Shown here piece after piece: positions 714 to 20,821 of a DNA stretch of 21,799 nt. The stretch is from Octopus sinensis. Lineage: Eukaryota. Position numbers and translations under genes: made by a program. A model generated the notes under the pieces. The model ran no database searches and was not told the origin of the DNA. It saw only the letters and a list, made by a program, of their open reading frames with translations. The stretch covers positions 1 to 21,799 of the forward strand of contig NW_021823593.1 in assembly GCF_006345805.1 (NCBI RefSeq), given 5' to 3'. Position 1 is the first letter of the stretch, and the number at the start of each line of letters is the position of its first letter.

Positions 714-1128
714 AGGAGTGGCTGTGTGGTAACTAGCTTGCTTATCAACCACATGGTTCCGGGTTCAGTCCCACTGCGTGGCACCTCGGGCAAGATTCTT
801 CTACTATAGCCTCGGGCCGACCAATGCCTTGTGAGTGGATTTGGTAGACGGAAACTGAAAGAAGCCCGTCGTATATATGTATATATATATGTATGTATAT
901 ATGTGTGTGTATGTTTGTGTGTCTGTGTTTGTCCCCCACCAACATCGCTTGACAAACGATGCTGGTGTGTTACGTCCCCCGTAACTTAGCGGTTCGGCAA
1001 AAGAGACCGATAGAATAAGCACTAGGCTTACAAAGAATAAGTCCTGGGGTCGATCTGCTCGACTAAAGGCGGTGCTCCAGCGTGGCCGCAATCAAATGAC
1101 TGAAACAAGTAAAAGAGTAAAAGAGTAT
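714..1128 (+). mobile_element. SINE family A copy 1 (tRNA-like head, CORE-like motif, internal TA/TG microsatellite, 3' module, AAAAGAGT tail)
   Basis: A-box-like TGGCTGTGTGG and B-box-like GGTTCAGTCC. The same ~410-bp unit recurs at 1129, 1540, 5407, 9759, 11758 and 21076. Confidence 0.92.
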
Positions 1129-1539
1129 AGGAGTGGCTGTGTGGTAAGTAACTTGCTTACCAACCACATGGTTCCGGGTTCAGTCCCACTGCGTGGCACC
1201 TTGGGCAAGTGTCTTCTACTATAGCCTCAGGCCAACCAAAGCCTTGCGAGTGGATTTGGTAGACGGAAACTGAAAGAAGCCCGTCGTATATATGTATATA
1301 TATGTATGTATGTGTGTGTGTGTATATGTATGTGTCTGTGTTTGTTCCCCCAACATCGCTTTACAACCGACGGTGGTATGTTTACGTCCCCGTAACTTAG
1401 CGGTTCGGCAAAAGAGACCGATAGAATAAGTTCTAGGTTACAAAGAATAAGTCCTGGGGGTCGATTTGCTCGACTAAAGGCGGTGCTCCAGCATGGCCGC
1501 AGTCAAATGACTGAAACAAATAAAAGAGTAAAAGAGTAT
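1129..1539 (+). mobile_element. SINE family A copy 2 (middle of head-to-tail trimer)
   Basis: Begins directly after the tail of copy 1 (AAAAGAGTAT|AGGAGTGG). Contains ACCTTGGGCAAGT (1198-1210), which resembles the MIR/CORE-SINE core. Confidence 0.92.
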
Positions 1540-1913
1540 AGGAGTGGCTGTGTGGTAAGTAGCTTGCTTACCAACAACATGGTTTCCGGTTCAGTCCCAC
1601 TGCGTAGCACCTTGGGCAAGTGTCTTCTACTATAGCCTCTGGCCAACCAAAGCATTGTGAGTGGATTAGGTAGACGGAAACTGAAAATGTACATATATGT
1701 ATGTATGTATGTAGTATGTATGTATGTATGTATGTGTGTGTGTGTATGTATGTGTGTCTGTGTTTGTTCCCCCAACATCGCTTTACAACCGACGGTGTGG
1801 TGTGTTTACGTCCCCGTAACTTAGCGGTTCGGCAAAAGAGACCGATAGAATAAGTTCTAGGTTACAAAGAATAAGTCCTGGGGTCGATTTGACTGAAACA
1901 AGTAAAAGAGTAT
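1540..1913 (+). mobile_element. SINE family A copy 3 with two internal deletions
   Basis: Same junction as between copies 1 and 2. Lacks GAAGCCCGTCG, and lacks the CTCGAC...GTCAAA block (TG microhomology near 1890). Confidence 0.9.
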
Positions 1914-2415
1914 CTGCTGACCAAGCTTTCCGCATTCACTTCCATTCATTTCTCTGGCGGTGCGTTTTTCGGACAGCTTAAATTGTTCATAAAAAAAGCG
2001 TGTTTTGTTTTCGAAAATATCTATTCTTTCTTTTAATTGTTTCCTCCATTGGTTGCGATGACAAGCATTGCTTCTCTAATTGACCTCCAATATATCTTAC
2101 ATGCTTTCAACGAAGTCTTTACACAATCCTTAAATCGTGATCTTTGTATCCGCTGTTGGTGATTTCCTTAAAGTTCGCCGCATAACATCTGCTTACGGAT
2201 TCTTCTATCATTCATCCGAACAAGATGTCCTGTTCAACGAAAATGGTGCTTTGAGCACCATCAGCTCAATGCTCAGGATGTCGGTGCCCCTCAAGAGCTC
2301 TGAGTCTGGGGACCGCAAGGACCGGCCAACATTCAGAATGGGTCTCAGACATCTCTAATTGGGAGCGTTCAAGGACCCTTACATGATACCCGTAAAGGAG
2401 TGACGTCAGCGCATC
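1914..2415 (-). mobile_element. Decayed RTE-clade LINE, C-terminal (post-RT) part of the ORF
   Basis: Manual minus-strand translation across frameshifts and stops: ALTSLLYG..HVRVLER / RCLRPILNV..DSELLRGTDILSIELMVLK / FR*TGHLVRMNDRRIRKQMLCGEL*..RFKDCVKTSLKAC / QWRKQLKERIDIFE / ECGKL. These follow the RTE motifs LLYG, RCLRxIL, LRWxGHxxRM, LYGEL, RFKD, WR..FE and CGK in the correct order. Confidence 0.88.
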
Positions 2416-4244: not shown

Positions 4245-4385
4245 ACACACGATATATACATACACATATATATGATATATACACACGTACGCACACACAC
4301 ATATATATACATACATAGATACACACATACACGCACACATACACATACTCATATACTTACATATGCATACATATGCACCTACATC

Positions 4386-4444
<59 letters not shown>

Positions 4445-4511
4445 ATATCTGTCTGTCTGTCTGTCTCTCTGTCTGTCTGTCTTTCTGTCTTTATGTCTCT
4501 CTGTCTCTCTG

Positions 4512-4588
<77 letters not shown>

Positions 4589-6666: not shown

Positions 6667-7096
6667 CAGAGAAGATCTGGGAGAGATAGTGGGTAGGAGG
6701 GAATTTCACACGCTACACACGTACCTTCCAAGCACTGCTGTAAACAGCAAAAGTGAGCTAGAATGTTAAAACTTGGTGCACATTCACAGTAGAGTTCAAT
6801 GTGAAACTTTGCCTAGCGGCTTCATAGTGCGTACTTTAGTTTCGTTACTATGGCAACAGTCCGGATCAGTCGTCGTATATACAGAGAAGATCTGGGAGAG
6901 ATAGTGGGTAGGAGGGCATTCCACACGCTACACACGTACCTTCCAAGCACTGCTGTAAACAGCAAAAGTGAGCTAGAATGTTAAAACCTGGTGCACATTC
7001 ACAGTAGAGTTCAATGTGAATCTTTGCCTAGCGGCATCATACTACGTACTTTAGTTTCGTTACTATGGCAACAGTCCGGATCAGTCGTCGTATATA
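6667..7096 (+). repeat. Tandem duplication of a 215-bp unit (6667-6881, 6882-7096)
   Basis: By-eye alignment gives 7 substitutions and no indels in 215 bp. A diverged partial third copy lies at 18154-18293. Confidence 0.92.
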
Positions 7097-7165
7097 CATG
7101 CATACATACGTATATGTGTACATATATGTATATATATTTGTTCATGTAATAGTGCATATATATAT

Positions 7166-7412
7166 AAAATAAATAAATGCGCCCTTTTAAAGCCTAGCCA
7201 AGCCCATGGGCCCGGTTTCCCGGTTTCTATGGCGTATGTGTTCCGTAGCTGGACGAGATGCCAGTCCATCGCAGCGTTACTCATTTTTGCCAGCTGAGTG
7301 GACTGGAGCAACGTGAAATGAAGTGTTTTGCTCAAGAGCACAACGCGTCACCCGGTCCAGGAATCGAAACCACAATCTTACGATTATGATGCTGACACCC
7401 TAACCACTAAGC

Positions 7413-7417
<5 letters not shown>
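7166..7417 (-). mobile_element. SINE family B
   Basis: Reverse complement has A box TGGCTTAGTGG, B-box-like GTTTCGATTCC, CTTGAGCAAAACACTT, GCGATGGACTGGCATC and a GGGCGCATTTATTTATTTT tail. Matches 15255-15510. Confidence 0.9.
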
Positions 7418-7450
<33 letters not shown>

Positions 7451-12750: not shown

Positions 12751-12979
12751 TTATTTCTTTATTGCCCACAAGGGGCTAAACACAGAGAGGACAAACAAGG
12801 ACAGACAAACGGATTAAGTCGATTATATCGACCCCAGTGCGTAAGTGGTACTTATTTAATCGACCCAGAAAGGATGAAAGGCAAAGTCGACCTCGGTGGA
12901 ATTTGAACTCAGAACGTAATGGCAGACGAAATACCGCTAAGCATTTCGCCTGGCGTGCTAACGTTTCTGCCAGCTCGCC
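12751..12979 (-). mobile_element. SINE family C solo monomer
   Basis: Reverse complement GGCGAGCTGGCAGAAACG...GAGTTCAAATTCC...CTTTCATCCTTTC..GTCGAT..AAGTACC...AAAGAAATAA. The central block resembles Deu/Nin-type SINE domains (recall only). Confidence 0.92.
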
Positions 12980-13100: not shown

Positions 13101-13237
13101 CAGAGCGCGAGAGAGAGTGAGAGAGAGAGAGAGATTCTGTGTTTTTAATTTTTCTTGTTGTTCAAACCAGATTTGCTTTCAAACAAGTAGACCTTTGATC
13201 AAAGGCTTCTAGTTTGGGCCATAATTCTCTCTTTCCT

Positions 13238-13311
<74 letters not shown>

Positions 13312-13341
13312 TTCCTTTCTTTCTTTCTTCCTTTCTTTCTT

Positions 13342-13397
<56 letters not shown>

Positions 13398-13410
13398 TCT
13401 CCCTCTCCTT
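13040..13410. repeat. (TG)n(GA)n and (TTTC)n(CT)n microsatellites
   Basis: Directly visible. Confidence 0.93.
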
Positions 13411-14068: not shown

Positions 14069-14197
14069 ATTTCCAAGTACAATAATATATTAATACTTCT
14101 CTTGGGATCTATAATTCTTAATGGAGTCGTAGGAGCATCATTCTAGTATACATTTTTTCCTGGGTACTTTTAGACGTGGTGGAGCCCAACCATTTCC

Positions 14198-14816
14198 AAG
14201 TCTGATCACGGCGAGCTGGCAAAAACGTAGCAAGCCGGACGAAATGCTCAGCGGTATTTCGTCTGCCGCTACGTTCTGAGTTCAAATTCCGCCGAGATTG
14301 ACTTTGCCCTTCATCATTTCGTGATCGATTAAAAAAGTAGCAGTTACGCACTGGGTCGATACAATCGACTTAATCCCTTTGTCTGTCTTTGTTTGTCTCC
14401 TTTGTGTTTAGCCCCTTGTGGGTAGTAAAGAAATAGGTATTTCGTCTGCTGCTACGTTCTGAGTTCAAATTCCGCCGAGGTCGACTTTGCCTTTCCTCCT
14501 TTCGGGGTCGATAAATTAAGTACCAGTTACACACTGGGGTCGATATAATCGACTTACTCCCTTTGTCTGTCCTTGTTTGTCTCCTCTGTATTTAGCCCCT
14601 TGTGGGTAGTAAAGAAATAGGTATTTCGTCTGCCATTACGTTCTGAGTTCAAATTCCGCCGAGGTCGACTTTGCCTTTCATCCTTTCGGGGTCGATTAAA
14701 TAAGAACCAGTTACGCACTGGGGTCGATATAATCGACTTAATCCGTTTGTTTGTCCTTGTTTGTCCCCTCTGTTTGTAGCCCCTTGTTGGCAGTAAAGAA
14801 ATAAGTCTGATCACGG
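14198..14816 (+). mobile_element. Family C SINE trimer flanked by a 14-bp TSD
   Basis: AAGTCTGATCACGG at 14198-14211 and 14803-14816. Units start GGTATTTC at 14253, 14436 and 14620 (periods 183 and 184). Confidence 0.93.
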
Positions 14817-14871
14817 ATGATTTCTTCCAGAGAGATAAACAGAAAGGGTTAAGGGAAAAGAAATAATTTAC

Positions 14872-15664
14872 TTAACCCATTGCCTGCTATGAGGCTCATT
14901 TGGAGATCTGCCAAAAATAGTTTCACTGCCGGTTGTTCATTAAAGTGAATTACTTATGTACATTGACTTTGCAGAGGTGGGTTTAACAATATTTAGCGTT
15001 TAAAGTTTGTCATATAAAGTTTGTCTGGTTAATTCAAGAGGACATTTCATGTTATAAATCGCAATTTTTGAACTACAAAAATATTGACTGCTTTGAAAAC
15101 GTTTCTTTTTAAATGCATTTCTCGTCTACATCATTCATTGATATTTCATGCACATTCACATTTGATACTATAGCTAAAAAAAACTAAAATGTTTATTATT
15201 GCAATTGAAAAGAAAAGGATAAATATATATTTTTTCCAAGTAATCCCCCCATTTGGTGGAGGCGCGTGGCTTAGTGGTTAGGGTGTCAGCACCATGATCG
15301 TAAGATTGTGGTTTCGATTCGTAGACCAGGCGACGCGTTGTGTTCTTGAGCAAAACATTTCATTTCACGTTGCTCCAGTCCACTCAGCTGGCAAAAATGA
15401 GTAACACTGCGATGGACTGGCATCCCGTCCAGCTGGGAAACGCATACGCCATAGAAACTGGGTCCATGAGCCTGCCTAAGCTTTAAAAAGGGCGCATTTA
15501 TTTATATTTTTAATCCCCATTTTGGACTTTTCAAAAAATTTATTATAATTTCCAAAATAATTCACATATGAAGACAATTTAAATACTCTATATTATTTTA
15601 ACTCCTAAGACACATGGCAAAACCAAAAAATATGAATTTAAAAAATTGGCAGTTAATGGGTTAA
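14872..15664. mobile_element. piggyBac-type non-autonomous element (MITE) with TTAA TSD
   Basis: TTAA|CCCATTGCCTGCTA (14872-14889) and TGGCAGTTAATGGG|TTAA (15647-15664). The 14-bp TIRs match at 11/14; no transposase ORF. Confidence 0.78.
15255..15510 (+). mobile_element. SINE family B inserted in the piggyBac MITE
   Basis: Full head and tail. Imperfect TSD: TAATCCCCCCATTTGG (15241-15256) and TAATCCCCATTTTGG (15511-15525). Confidence 0.92.
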
Positions 15665-16572: not shown

Positions 16573-16928
16573 ACAATCCTTTCTATTATAGGTACAAGCC
16601 TGAAATCTGGGGGAGAGGGATAATCAATTACATCGACCTCAGTACTCAAATAGTACTTAATTTATCCACTCCGAAAGGATGAAAGGTAAAGTCAACCTCG
16701 GCGGAATTTGAACTCAGAACATAGCGGCAGACGAAATACCTATTTCTTTACTACCCACAAGGGGCTAAACATAGAAGGGACGAACAAGGACAGACAAACG
16801 GATTAAGTCGATTATATCGACCCCAGTGCGTAGCGGCAGACGAAATCTGTGCATCTGTTCGGGAATCGAACCCACGATCTAACGATAGTGAGTGCAACAC
16901 CCTAACCCCATGGCCATGTGCCTTCGCA
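16573..16928 (-). mobile_element. Chimeric SINE: B-type tRNA head + internally deleted C unit + second C unit with a different 3' tail
   Basis: Head at 16847-16928, then ATTTCGTCTGCCGCTACG joined straight to CACTGGGGTCG, then the canonical multimer junction at 16733-16746. The second unit ends CCCTCTCCCCCAGATTTCAGGCTTGTACCTATAATAGAAAGG. Confidence 0.85.
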
Positions 16929-16976: not shown

Positions 16977-17303
16977 GGAGCACTCCGTTAGTTGCGACGA
17001 CGAGGGTCCCAGCTGATCAATGGAACAGCCTGATCGTGAAATTAACGTGTAAGTGGCTGAGCACTCCACAAACACGTGTACTCTTAACGTAGTTCTCGGG
17101 GATATTCAGCGTGACACAGTGTGTGACAAGGCTGGCCCTTCTGAAATACAGGTACTACTAATTTTTGCCAGCTGAGTGGACTGGAGCAACGTGAAAAATA
17201 AAGTGTCTTGCTCAAGGACACAACGCGCCGCCGCCGGGAATTGAACTCACGACCTTACGATCAAGAGCCGAATGCCCCTAACCACTAAGCCACGCGCCTT
17301 CAC
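16977..17303 (-). mobile_element. SINE family D (B-type head and centre, different 3' tail)
   Basis: Shares its first ~150 nt with family B up to CTCAGCTGGCAAAAAT and then diverges. Candidate 9-bp TSD TATATTCAA at 16968-16976 and 17305-17313. Confidence 0.9.
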
Positions 17304-17503
17304 TTATATTCAAATACAGGCACACACGTGTATGTGTATTGTATGTGTGTGTGTGTCTGTGTTTGCATTTGTATGTGTTTGAAACAAGGACAAAATAAAA
17401 TGCGTCAGACACCCAGAAGACATGCAAACATGTAACGTGTTGCGCAGGTTTCTTCTTTTTTCTCTTTCGTGGGCGCAATGTCGGACAAGTGTTCAGAAGT
17501 TAC

Positions 17504-17634: not shown

Positions 17635-17799
17635 CTTGAAGAAAAATTAACCACTTTTCTCTTTTAGCTTGTTATATCCGGCCAGTACTGTAATATAAGA
17701 TGTCTGATGCATTTGGTGACATTTGGGCGAAAAAAAAAAGGCAGTTGTTTCTCCTTTTTCCGCTTTTCATTCTGACGGTCTTTTCTCTCTTTCTCACTA

Positions 17800-18150
17800 T
17801 ACATACACACATACGTACGTACATACATACGTATGTACGTACATACATACATACATACATACGTACGTACGTACACACATACATACATACATACTCATAT
17901 GCAATCATACATACATACATACATACAATCATACATATATACATACATACATACATACATGCATACATACATACATACATATATACATGCATACATACGT
18001 ACATACATACATACATGTAGCATACATACATATATACATACATACATACATATATACATGCATACATACATGCATACATACATACATGCATACATGCATG
18101 CTCACTTATATACATACACATACACACACATACATATATACATAATACAT
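17800..18150. repeat. (TACA)n-rich microsatellite
   Basis: Directly visible. Confidence 0.95.
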
Positions 18151-18153
18151 ATA

Positions 18154-18321: not shown

Positions 18322-18490
18322 CTACCTGGACGGGAGATCGTTCCATTACAGGATTACTCATTTTTACCGGCTGAGCGGTAAAATGAAGTGTTTTGCTCAA
18401 GAACACAACTCATCGCCCGGTCCAGGAATCGAAACCACAACCTAACGATCATGAGATTAACACCCTAACCACTAAGCCATACGCCTTCAC
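18322..18490 (-). mobile_element. SINE family B, 3'-truncated with internal deletion
   Basis: Intact head (CCACTAAGCCATACGCCTTCAC on the plus strand); the TGGACTGGAGCAAC block is missing. Confidence 0.85.
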
Positions 18491-18583
18491 TTAGAATACA
18501 TATAACCATAGAGAAAATGACTAACACCAAGATAAGGCTAAAAACGGATTCATTTCCGTATTATCTAAATTTAGTTGCATTAT

Positions 18584-19934: not shown

Positions 19935-20460
19935 TATGTGGTTAGACGTTAGCTTCCCAACCATATTGTACCCATTTCTTTATTACCCACAAGGGGCTAA
20001 ACATAGAGGGGACACACAAGGACATACATAGGTATTAAGTCGATTACATCGACCCCAGTGCATGATTGGTACTTAATTTATCGACCCCGAAAGGATGAAA
20101 GGCAAAGTCGACCTCGGCGGAATTTGAACTCACAACGTAACGGCAGATGAAATACTGCAAAGCATTTCTCCCGGCGTGCTAACGCTTCTGCCAGCTCGCC
20201 GCCTTCCCAACCATATTGTTCCATGCTCTGTCCCACTGCATGGCACCTTGGACAAGTGTCTTCTACAAGAGCCTCGGGGCCAACCAAAGCCTTGTCAGAC
20301 GGTTTGACCACCGGTACTGGTGTGTTTACGCCATCGTAACATAGCGGTTCGGAACAAGAGACCAATAGAGTAAGAACGAAGCTTAAAAAAATTTCTTCAA
20401 AGAGGTGCTCCGACATGTCTGCAGTCTAATGACTCTGAACCAAGTAAAAGATAAAAGATT
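19935..20460 (+). mobile_element. Old family A SINE lacking the internal microsatellite, interrupted by a C monomer
   Basis: Head fragment at 19935-19969 and remainder at 20203-20460, ending GTAAAAGATAAAAGAT. Confidence 0.82.
19974..20202 (-). mobile_element. SINE family C solo monomer with 17-bp TSD
   Basis: CTTCCCAACCATATTGT at 19953-19969 and 20203-20219. Confidence 0.93.
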
Positions 20461-20473
20461 ACTACTACTACTA

Positions 20474-20521
<48 letters not shown>

Positions 20522-20698
20522 CACCACCACCACCGCCGCCACTACTACTACTACTACTACCACCACCACCACCACAACAACTACAACCACCACAACAACC
20601 ACAACCACCACCACCACCACCACCACCACTACTACTACTACTACTACCACCGCAACCACACCACTACTACTACTACTACTACTACAACCACCACCACC

Positions 20699-20730
<32 letters not shown>

Positions 20731-20780
20731 CACCCCCACCCCCCCACCACAATCACCCCCATTACTACTACTACTACTAC

Positions 20781-20821
<41 letters not shown>

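Follow-up and report, generated by a model that had tools for sequence, protein, structure and literature searches.

A head-to-tail SINE trimer within one target-site duplication in octopus, with reverse transcriptase template jumps as a candidate origin

SINEs are annotated over 11.6% of the O. vulgaris genome (PMC13282606) and make up roughly a tenth of octopus genomes. Little has been documented so far on how interspersed repeats become tandem ones. Squamates have SINE-derived satellites, and in the ark clam S. broughtonii SINEs form arrays of the type TSD1-(SINE)n-TSD1, in which a single target-site duplication (TSD) encloses the units (Martelossi et al. 2024, PMC11481361). Head-to-tail units in one retrocopy with one TSD also characterize the dimeric and trimeric SINEs (Alu, and the dimers and trimers of tRNA units cited in PMC4758252). 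Template switching by reverse transcriptase (RT) is an accepted route for the exchange of SINE modules (PMC4758252), and jumps from the end of one template to the end of another by the non-LTR RT of R2 are cited in the literature.

The octopus array described here shares features with several of these systems. Like the clam arrays it comes from a mollusc and has one TSD, a complete head in the first unit and one common head truncation in the later units. Like the dimeric and trimeric SINEs it consists of head-to-tail units within one TSD, and like the template-switch chimeras (U6/L1, Ceph-SINE and mosaic SINEs, R2) it has the 3' end of one RNA joined to an internal or 5' position of another RNA in the same orientation, one TSD and parts of mixed source. 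Head-to-tail neighbours are also seen in the SINEU-3 tandems (PMC4494074), and retrozymes and the partial tandems of Penelope-like elements are likewise tandem non-autonomous retroelements whose junction is possibly formed at the RNA level.

The window, that is, the whole stretch of 21,799 nt of DNA that was analyzed, was picked for containing the array, and the sample is small: the comparison set was formed by the window and five O. bimaculoides loci (L001 to L005, 150 kb), together 172 kb. The five loci were found via O. bimaculoides proteins with SINE-like segments, using a composite query of SINE-frame translations. This query matched no proteins but those of O. bimaculoides, which places the window in an Octopus genome, perhaps that of O. 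bimaculoides or a close relative. The annotated proteins (P0002, P0003, P0007, P0012 and P0014, at L001-L005) contain stretches 62-88% identical to SINE-frame translations and include a "probable lysosomal cobalamin transporter" and actin-related protein 10 isoform X1; these stretches could be exonised SINEs or gene-model artefacts. No copy of the array SINE was found in L006.

The SINE family and the structure of the array

The array element is a member of a SINE superfamily in which the head (positions 1-42) and core (43 to about 150) are shared and the tail is of two homologous kinds. Tail A, which ends ..CCCCTTGTGGGYARTAAAGAAATA, is that of the array element and is rare, with three partial copies in 150 kb, whereas tail B, ending ..CAGGCCTTGTGCCTTTAGTAGAAAGGATT(ATT)n, is common (about 25 copies). 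The elements are non-coding and 224-226 nt long, with TSDs of 14 and 17 bp, and about 35 related copies are present in the 172 kb; an A-box-like TGGCAGAAACG and a B-box-like GAGTTCAAATTCC can be read in every full copy. Neither ARAGORN nor the Rfam tRNA model found a tRNA match for the head, in the array or in a solo head, and region 14190-14820 gave no match to hammerhead or other ribozymes or to any Rfam family at E<=10. Protein searches with an antisense ORF spanning the junction, an exact scan of metagenome and viral DNA collections with a 25-mer of the core, and a literature search on the sequence motifs of the SINE returned no match or relevant paper.

No partner LINE sharing the tail was found in the 172 kb, where the tail matched SINE copies only. 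At L003:22946-23557 (+) a C-terminal fragment of a LINE-like ORF adjoins two tail-B SINE copies. The LINE-fragment query matched only non-octopus ENA contigs; relatives with about 55% identity are present in ENA assemblies and in the coral Montipora capricornis, and the fragment is a candidate partner at most.

The array consists of one full unit followed by two head-less units of about 184 nt (Table 1), as the preliminary description had proposed and as blastn and reading of the sequence confirmed; TRF gave a period of 184 bp with 3.0 copies and 90% matches at 14253-14803. A single 14-bp TSD around the array, with none between units, had also been claimed, and the 14-mer indeed occurs exactly twice in the window (shuffle expectation 0). 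The final A of the unit 3 tail doubles as a TSD base, and the units abut directly, with neither spacer nor repeat between them. Unit 1 starts about 3-5 nt inside the family consensus 5' end and contains an A-box-like TGGCAAAAACG (14217-14227), a B-box-like GAGTTCAAATTCC (14278-14290), a hairpin at 14236-14265 with the loop CAGC (14249-14252) and a complete tail that terminates in AAAGAAATA. Units 2 and 3 are without the first 42 nt of the element, and the order is full/truncated/truncated; breakpoint positions are defined only to within 1-3 nt. These results support the conclusion that the trimer inserted, or at least now sits, as a single piece within one TSD.

Table 1. Coordinates of the array, the second junction locus and the solo elements in the window
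Feature	Position	Strand	Basis
Left TSD copy, AAGTCTGATCACGG	14198..14211	+	exact 14-mer
Unit 1, full element of 224 nt, head present	14212..14435	+	reading, blastn
Unit 2, 184 nt, begins at G43; no A box, B box and full tail kept	14436..14619	+	reading, blastn
Unit 3, 184 nt, begins at G43, full tail	14620..14803	+	reading, blastn
Right TSD copy	14803..14816	+	exact 14-mer
Second locus, downstream piece: tail-B family unit from G43, directly after tail A	16575..16740	-	tail matches B tails of L001, L003 and L004
Second locus, middle piece: positions ~46-63, then 135-226 with complete tail A	16741..16846	-	sequence comparison
Second locus, upstream piece: head from another SINE family, with B box GGTTCGATTCC	16847..16925	-	sequence comparison
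Solo full-length element, tail A	12752..12977	-	blastn
Solo full-length element, tail A, exact 17-bp TSD ACAATATGGTTGGGAAG at 19953-19969 and 20203-20219	19974..20198	-	blastn

Over 184 columns units 1 and 2 differ at 19 positions, units 1 and 3 at 22 and units 2 and 3 at 16, the array units being 88-91% alike (9-12% different). They are no nearer one another than to unlinked copies: the closest relative of unit 3 is the unlinked solo element at 12752, with 10 differences against 16 to unit 2. Unit 2 carries the allele GATAAATTAAG and unit 3 the allele GATTAAATAAG, units 1 and 3 being of the GATTAAA type. GATAAATTAAG and the GATTAAA type differ at two linked sites, and both are widespread in copies of both tail families. 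Eight of the 16 differences between units 2 and 3 lie at family-polymorphic sites, and in control pairs of independent insertions the corresponding values ranged from 7/18 to 13/28. Unit 1 is about twice as far from the consensus as units 2 and 3, with approximately 11 private changes in positions 43-226 compared to 3-5 in each of the others, and either came from a more decayed source or is older. The alleles and distances suggest that the units derive from different source transcripts, with moderate statistics (p of about 0.07 to 0.001, depending on the assumptions).

The junction, the second locus and neighbouring repeats

The 22-mer AAAGAAATA|GGTATTTCGTCTG (= AAAGAAATAGGTATTTCGTCTG), which spans the join between units, has three exact matches in the window, at 14427 (+), 14611 (+) and 16728-16749 (-), and none in shuffles, in agreement with the earlier claim that the junction is identical twice in the array and once at an opposite-strand locus. 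No further copy was found in the window with 3-4 edits tolerated. In the 150 kb of O. bimaculoides DNA, with about 30 related copies, the junction was absent, which places its frequency below about 10% of copies.

The 5' side of the join is the true 3' terminus of the element, which reads ..CCCCTTGTGGGYARTAAAGAAAT: all nine A-type tails, followed by a unit or not, have AAAGAAATA as their last bases. The 3' side is G43, the base with which pairing begins in the 3' arm of a 13-bp hairpin (..GGGCGAAATGCT-TAGC-GGTATTTCGTCTG..) that was predicted by folding in unit 1 and is kept in 14/14 full copies compared. The internal units thus miss a first small hairpin and the 5' arm and loop of the main hairpin. 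The tail closes with GAAATA, six bases whose reverse complement, TATTTC, stands at positions 45-50, and the junction itself folds as a small hairpin with the join in the loop (-6.9 kcal/mol; 1/200 shuffles as good). None of about six solo 5'-truncated copies in the 172 kb clearly starts at G43, the one at L005:19950 being ambiguous, so that a general stop at this base is at most putative, a point against the jump model discussed below.

The third exact match lies in a locus on the opposite strand that is composed of three pieces (Table 1). A foreign head, other copies of which occur in the window at 7355-7442, 15260-15320, 17235-17339 and 18420-18509, is joined to the element at about positions 44-46 (..TGCACAG|ATTTCGTCTG). 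In the middle piece positions 64-134 are deleted between TACG repeats, with the join at 16829/16828, and at 16741/16740 this tail-A element is joined to a unit of the other tail family. The head swap (16847/16846) and the 71-nt deletion, both in one element, look like template-switch footprints. Pairing of the foreign head with the hairpin arm was considered for the chimera and rejected, since it was no better than in shuffles (z = -0.26). No TSD was found around the whole locus or around its last unit. The preliminary description had presented this as an independent locus sharing the junction; the junction is identical, but the locus is chimeric, with pieces from three SINE families and no TSD, and is not a similar multimer. 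The array and the second locus together show three or four breakpoints within 4 nt, with differing partners. The same join with other partners, together with a head swap at the same bases, points to a recurrent breakpoint rather than one master.

Solo monomers had been placed at 12751 and 19974, and both are present (Table 1); no clear TSD was seen around the former. In both, GG(G)T follows the tail GAAAT (12752-12760 and 19970-19974, minus strand) and is similar to the bases with which the following unit opens at the junction. It could be read as the trace of a junction-bearing template, but this is a weak lead, and at 19974 the GG is more simply explained by a 20-bp TSD with one mismatch.

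The window is dense in microsatellites and SINEs. Another head-to-tail trimer, at 714-1914 (+), is formed by a second SINE family, which is very abundant, about 412 nt long and contains a microsatellite; the trimer has direct tail|head joins AAAGAGTAT|AGGAGTGGCTG at 1128 and 1539; its units are full length, the third being internally deleted, and are 90-92% alike, no closer than to the unlinked copy at L002:2058-2462 (92%). No TSD was detectable at this trimer or at solo copies of the same family, and no other tail|head junction of this family was found in the 172 kb. Head-to-tail pairs of tail-B copies are present at L001:18496-18878, L001:35786-36125, L003:22347-22735, L004:1135-1504 and L005:7796-8180. 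Nearly all tail-B copies are preceded by (ATT)n, which suggests insertion into their own tail repeat, and the truncated second copy at L004 lies between two copies of the 12-bp repeat ATAATATGTAAT. A 215-bp unit unrelated to the SINEs studied occurs twice at 6667-7098 (96% identity). Long tri- and tetranucleotide microsatellites, for example (TCTA)88, (TGTA)69 and (TAC)122, lie at 107-456, 2612-2887, 4383-4588, 13225-13400, 17799-18151 and 20460-20821 and gave rise to many spurious sub-threshold microRNA-like Rfam matches.

Possible origins of the trimer

The best reading of the array, one that we hold with middling confidence, is that RT jumped between templates at a hot spot in the course of a single integration. 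A template jump was among three routes proposed in the preliminary description and is the best fit of the three. The RT of a partner LINE, primed at the nicked target, would have copied a SINE RNA from its 3' tail to G43, left the template at that base and carried on from the 3' terminus of a second SINE RNA. A second jump, likewise at G43 of the second RNA, would have been followed by copying of a third RNA to, or almost to, its 5' end, which would yield a full unit and two units starting at position 43 within one TSD, the units being supplied by different source copies. The hot spot may depend on two properties, namely the location of G43 at the apex of the hairpin and pairing of the acceptor tail GAAAUA with UAUUUC (45-50) of the donor, which would set the acceptor 3' end beside G43. 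In a variant of this mechanism, a processed RNA with its 5' end at G43 would be joined either through an end-to-end jump or through ligation of a loop that had been nicked. We infer that the join was made by RT, in one event. The jump model accounts for the order full/truncated/truncated within a single TSD, for joins made at the true 3' terminus and for units that are heterogeneous, as well as for the join between two families and the head swap at the same site. Template-switch products are recognized by one TSD and a 3' end joined to an upstream position in the same orientation; the trimer has all of these features, and the second locus lacks the TSD.

If instead, in line with the heritable, mobilised form inferred in the preliminary description, a multimeric master were transcribed, the junction would be inherited rather than made again each time, an explanation that we consider rather unlikely. 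The single TSD around the array would agree with it, as would the presence of the A box in unit 1 only and the absence of a TTTT terminator from the array and the 260 nt that follow (the first occurs at 15065), and dimeric and trimeric SINE families are well known. The motif GGGTAG is found in all three tails that precede a junction and in none of six other tails (1 in 84 at face value, and post hoc), a hint of the shared junction ancestry that a multimeric master predicts; beyond it, no unit-specific substitution is common to the trimer and the second locus. The twofold higher divergence of unit 1, which may be older, also counts against the jump model. On the other hand, a single trimer was seen, the O. 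bimaculoides DNA contains no junction, and the fusion of a foreign head at the same site is left unexplained. Moreover, the second junction unites two tail families without a TSD and therefore cannot descend from the master of the trimer. The two loci lie only 2 kb apart in inverted orientation, and the 43 bases around the junction, which belong to the most conserved parts of the family, are identical, so that local gene conversion between them is possible.

Amplification of a solo insertion in place, at the DNA level, by unequal crossing-over or replication slippage, a model proposed for the single-TSD arrays of the ark clam and for SINE-derived satellites, seems improbable, even if an outer TSD, a first unit with full head and equal head truncations fit the pattern TSD1-(SINE)n-TSD1 (PMC11481361) and the divergence of unit 1 exceeds that of units 2 and 3. 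Units end at the 3' terminus of the element, which DNA duplication would reach only by luck (the clam units are tail-truncated), and the identical breakpoint is found at a second locus with other flanks. This boundary and its recurrence make a one-off local duplication unlikely, as had been argued in the preliminary description. The different family-wide alleles of the units, which are no nearer each other than unlinked copies, argue against in-place duplication and equally against a single RNA copied by rolling circle. Independent insertions of 5'-truncated copies, one after another, into a resident tail are a process that clearly operates on tail-B copies, which are often found as head-to-tail pairs beside an (ATT)n tail, with the second copy at L004:1135-1504 truncated and flanked by its own 12-bp repeat; TSD-sandwiching SINEU-3 tandems are also known (PMC4494074), and unit 1 seems older. 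As the origin of the trimer they are nonetheless decidedly improbable: there is no inner TSD or spacer, though the family makes TSDs of 14-17 bp, and three events would be needed, in each of which the break would have to be blunt and fall exactly on the tail end and the cDNA would have to stop exactly at G43. A circular 184-nt SINE RNA (43-226) reverse-transcribed by rolling circle, as in retrozymes, would yield exactly this junction if the circle were closed from the 3' end to G43, and pairing of the tail with the hairpin arm can place both ends side by side. This route, also among those proposed earlier, turned out to be a poor fit and is highly improbable, since no ribozyme motif or Rfam family was found at E<=10, unit 1 has a 42-nt head that such a circle would not contain, units 2 and 3 differ at 16/184 sites, including the linked two-site subfamily marker, and the second junction lies between two families.

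A bolder extension of the jump model, which we regard as a long shot, is that the hairpin apex and a tail mimicking the 5' arm constitute a built-in concatenation signal, through which tails would be joined to G43, either by RT jumps that RNA-RNA pairing guides or by ligation of a nicked hairpin resembling an anticodon loop, and the multimers would be retrotransposed and possibly transcribed and inherited. If true, octopus genomes would regularly gain tandem repeats and new chimeric SINE families from this signal.

Comparison with known systems

Under the template-jump reading, the unit boundary at the 3' end and the fixed donor site in a hairpin would preserve, cleanly and in a natural setting, the trace of a non-LTR RT that jumped serially, and the trimer would connect the formation of SINE chimeras with the birth of tandem arrays. 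If the multimer is also transcribed and recopied, it would represent an early stage of a new multimeric SINE family.

The internal units of the clam arrays are truncated in the 3' tail as well, and unequal recombination is discussed by the authors as a possible origin; in the octopus array, by contrast, every tail is complete, the breakpoint coincides with a hairpin apex, and the units, 9-12% diverged, carry different subfamily alleles. Dimeric and trimeric SINE families have many copies of fixed architecture, whereas one trimer and one heterologous chimera were found here, and the internal units have no A box. Compared with the template-switch chimeras, the partners in the trimer are all copies of one SINE, the joins recur at a single fixed donor position, and the product is a tandem array. 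In SINEU-3 tandems and tail-B pairs a TSD or a microsatellite lies between the copies and the heads are usually full, while the octopus array has no spacer or inner TSD. It differs from the retrozymes in that no ribozyme motif was found, the first unit has an extra head and the units are non-identical. Since multimeric SINEs, single-TSD arrays in a mollusc and RT switching between SINE modules are already in the literature, the novelty of the octopus locus is limited. The trimer is a homomeric variant of such concatemers, with complete tails and a fixed hairpin donor site, and constitutes a testable lead rather than a new category.
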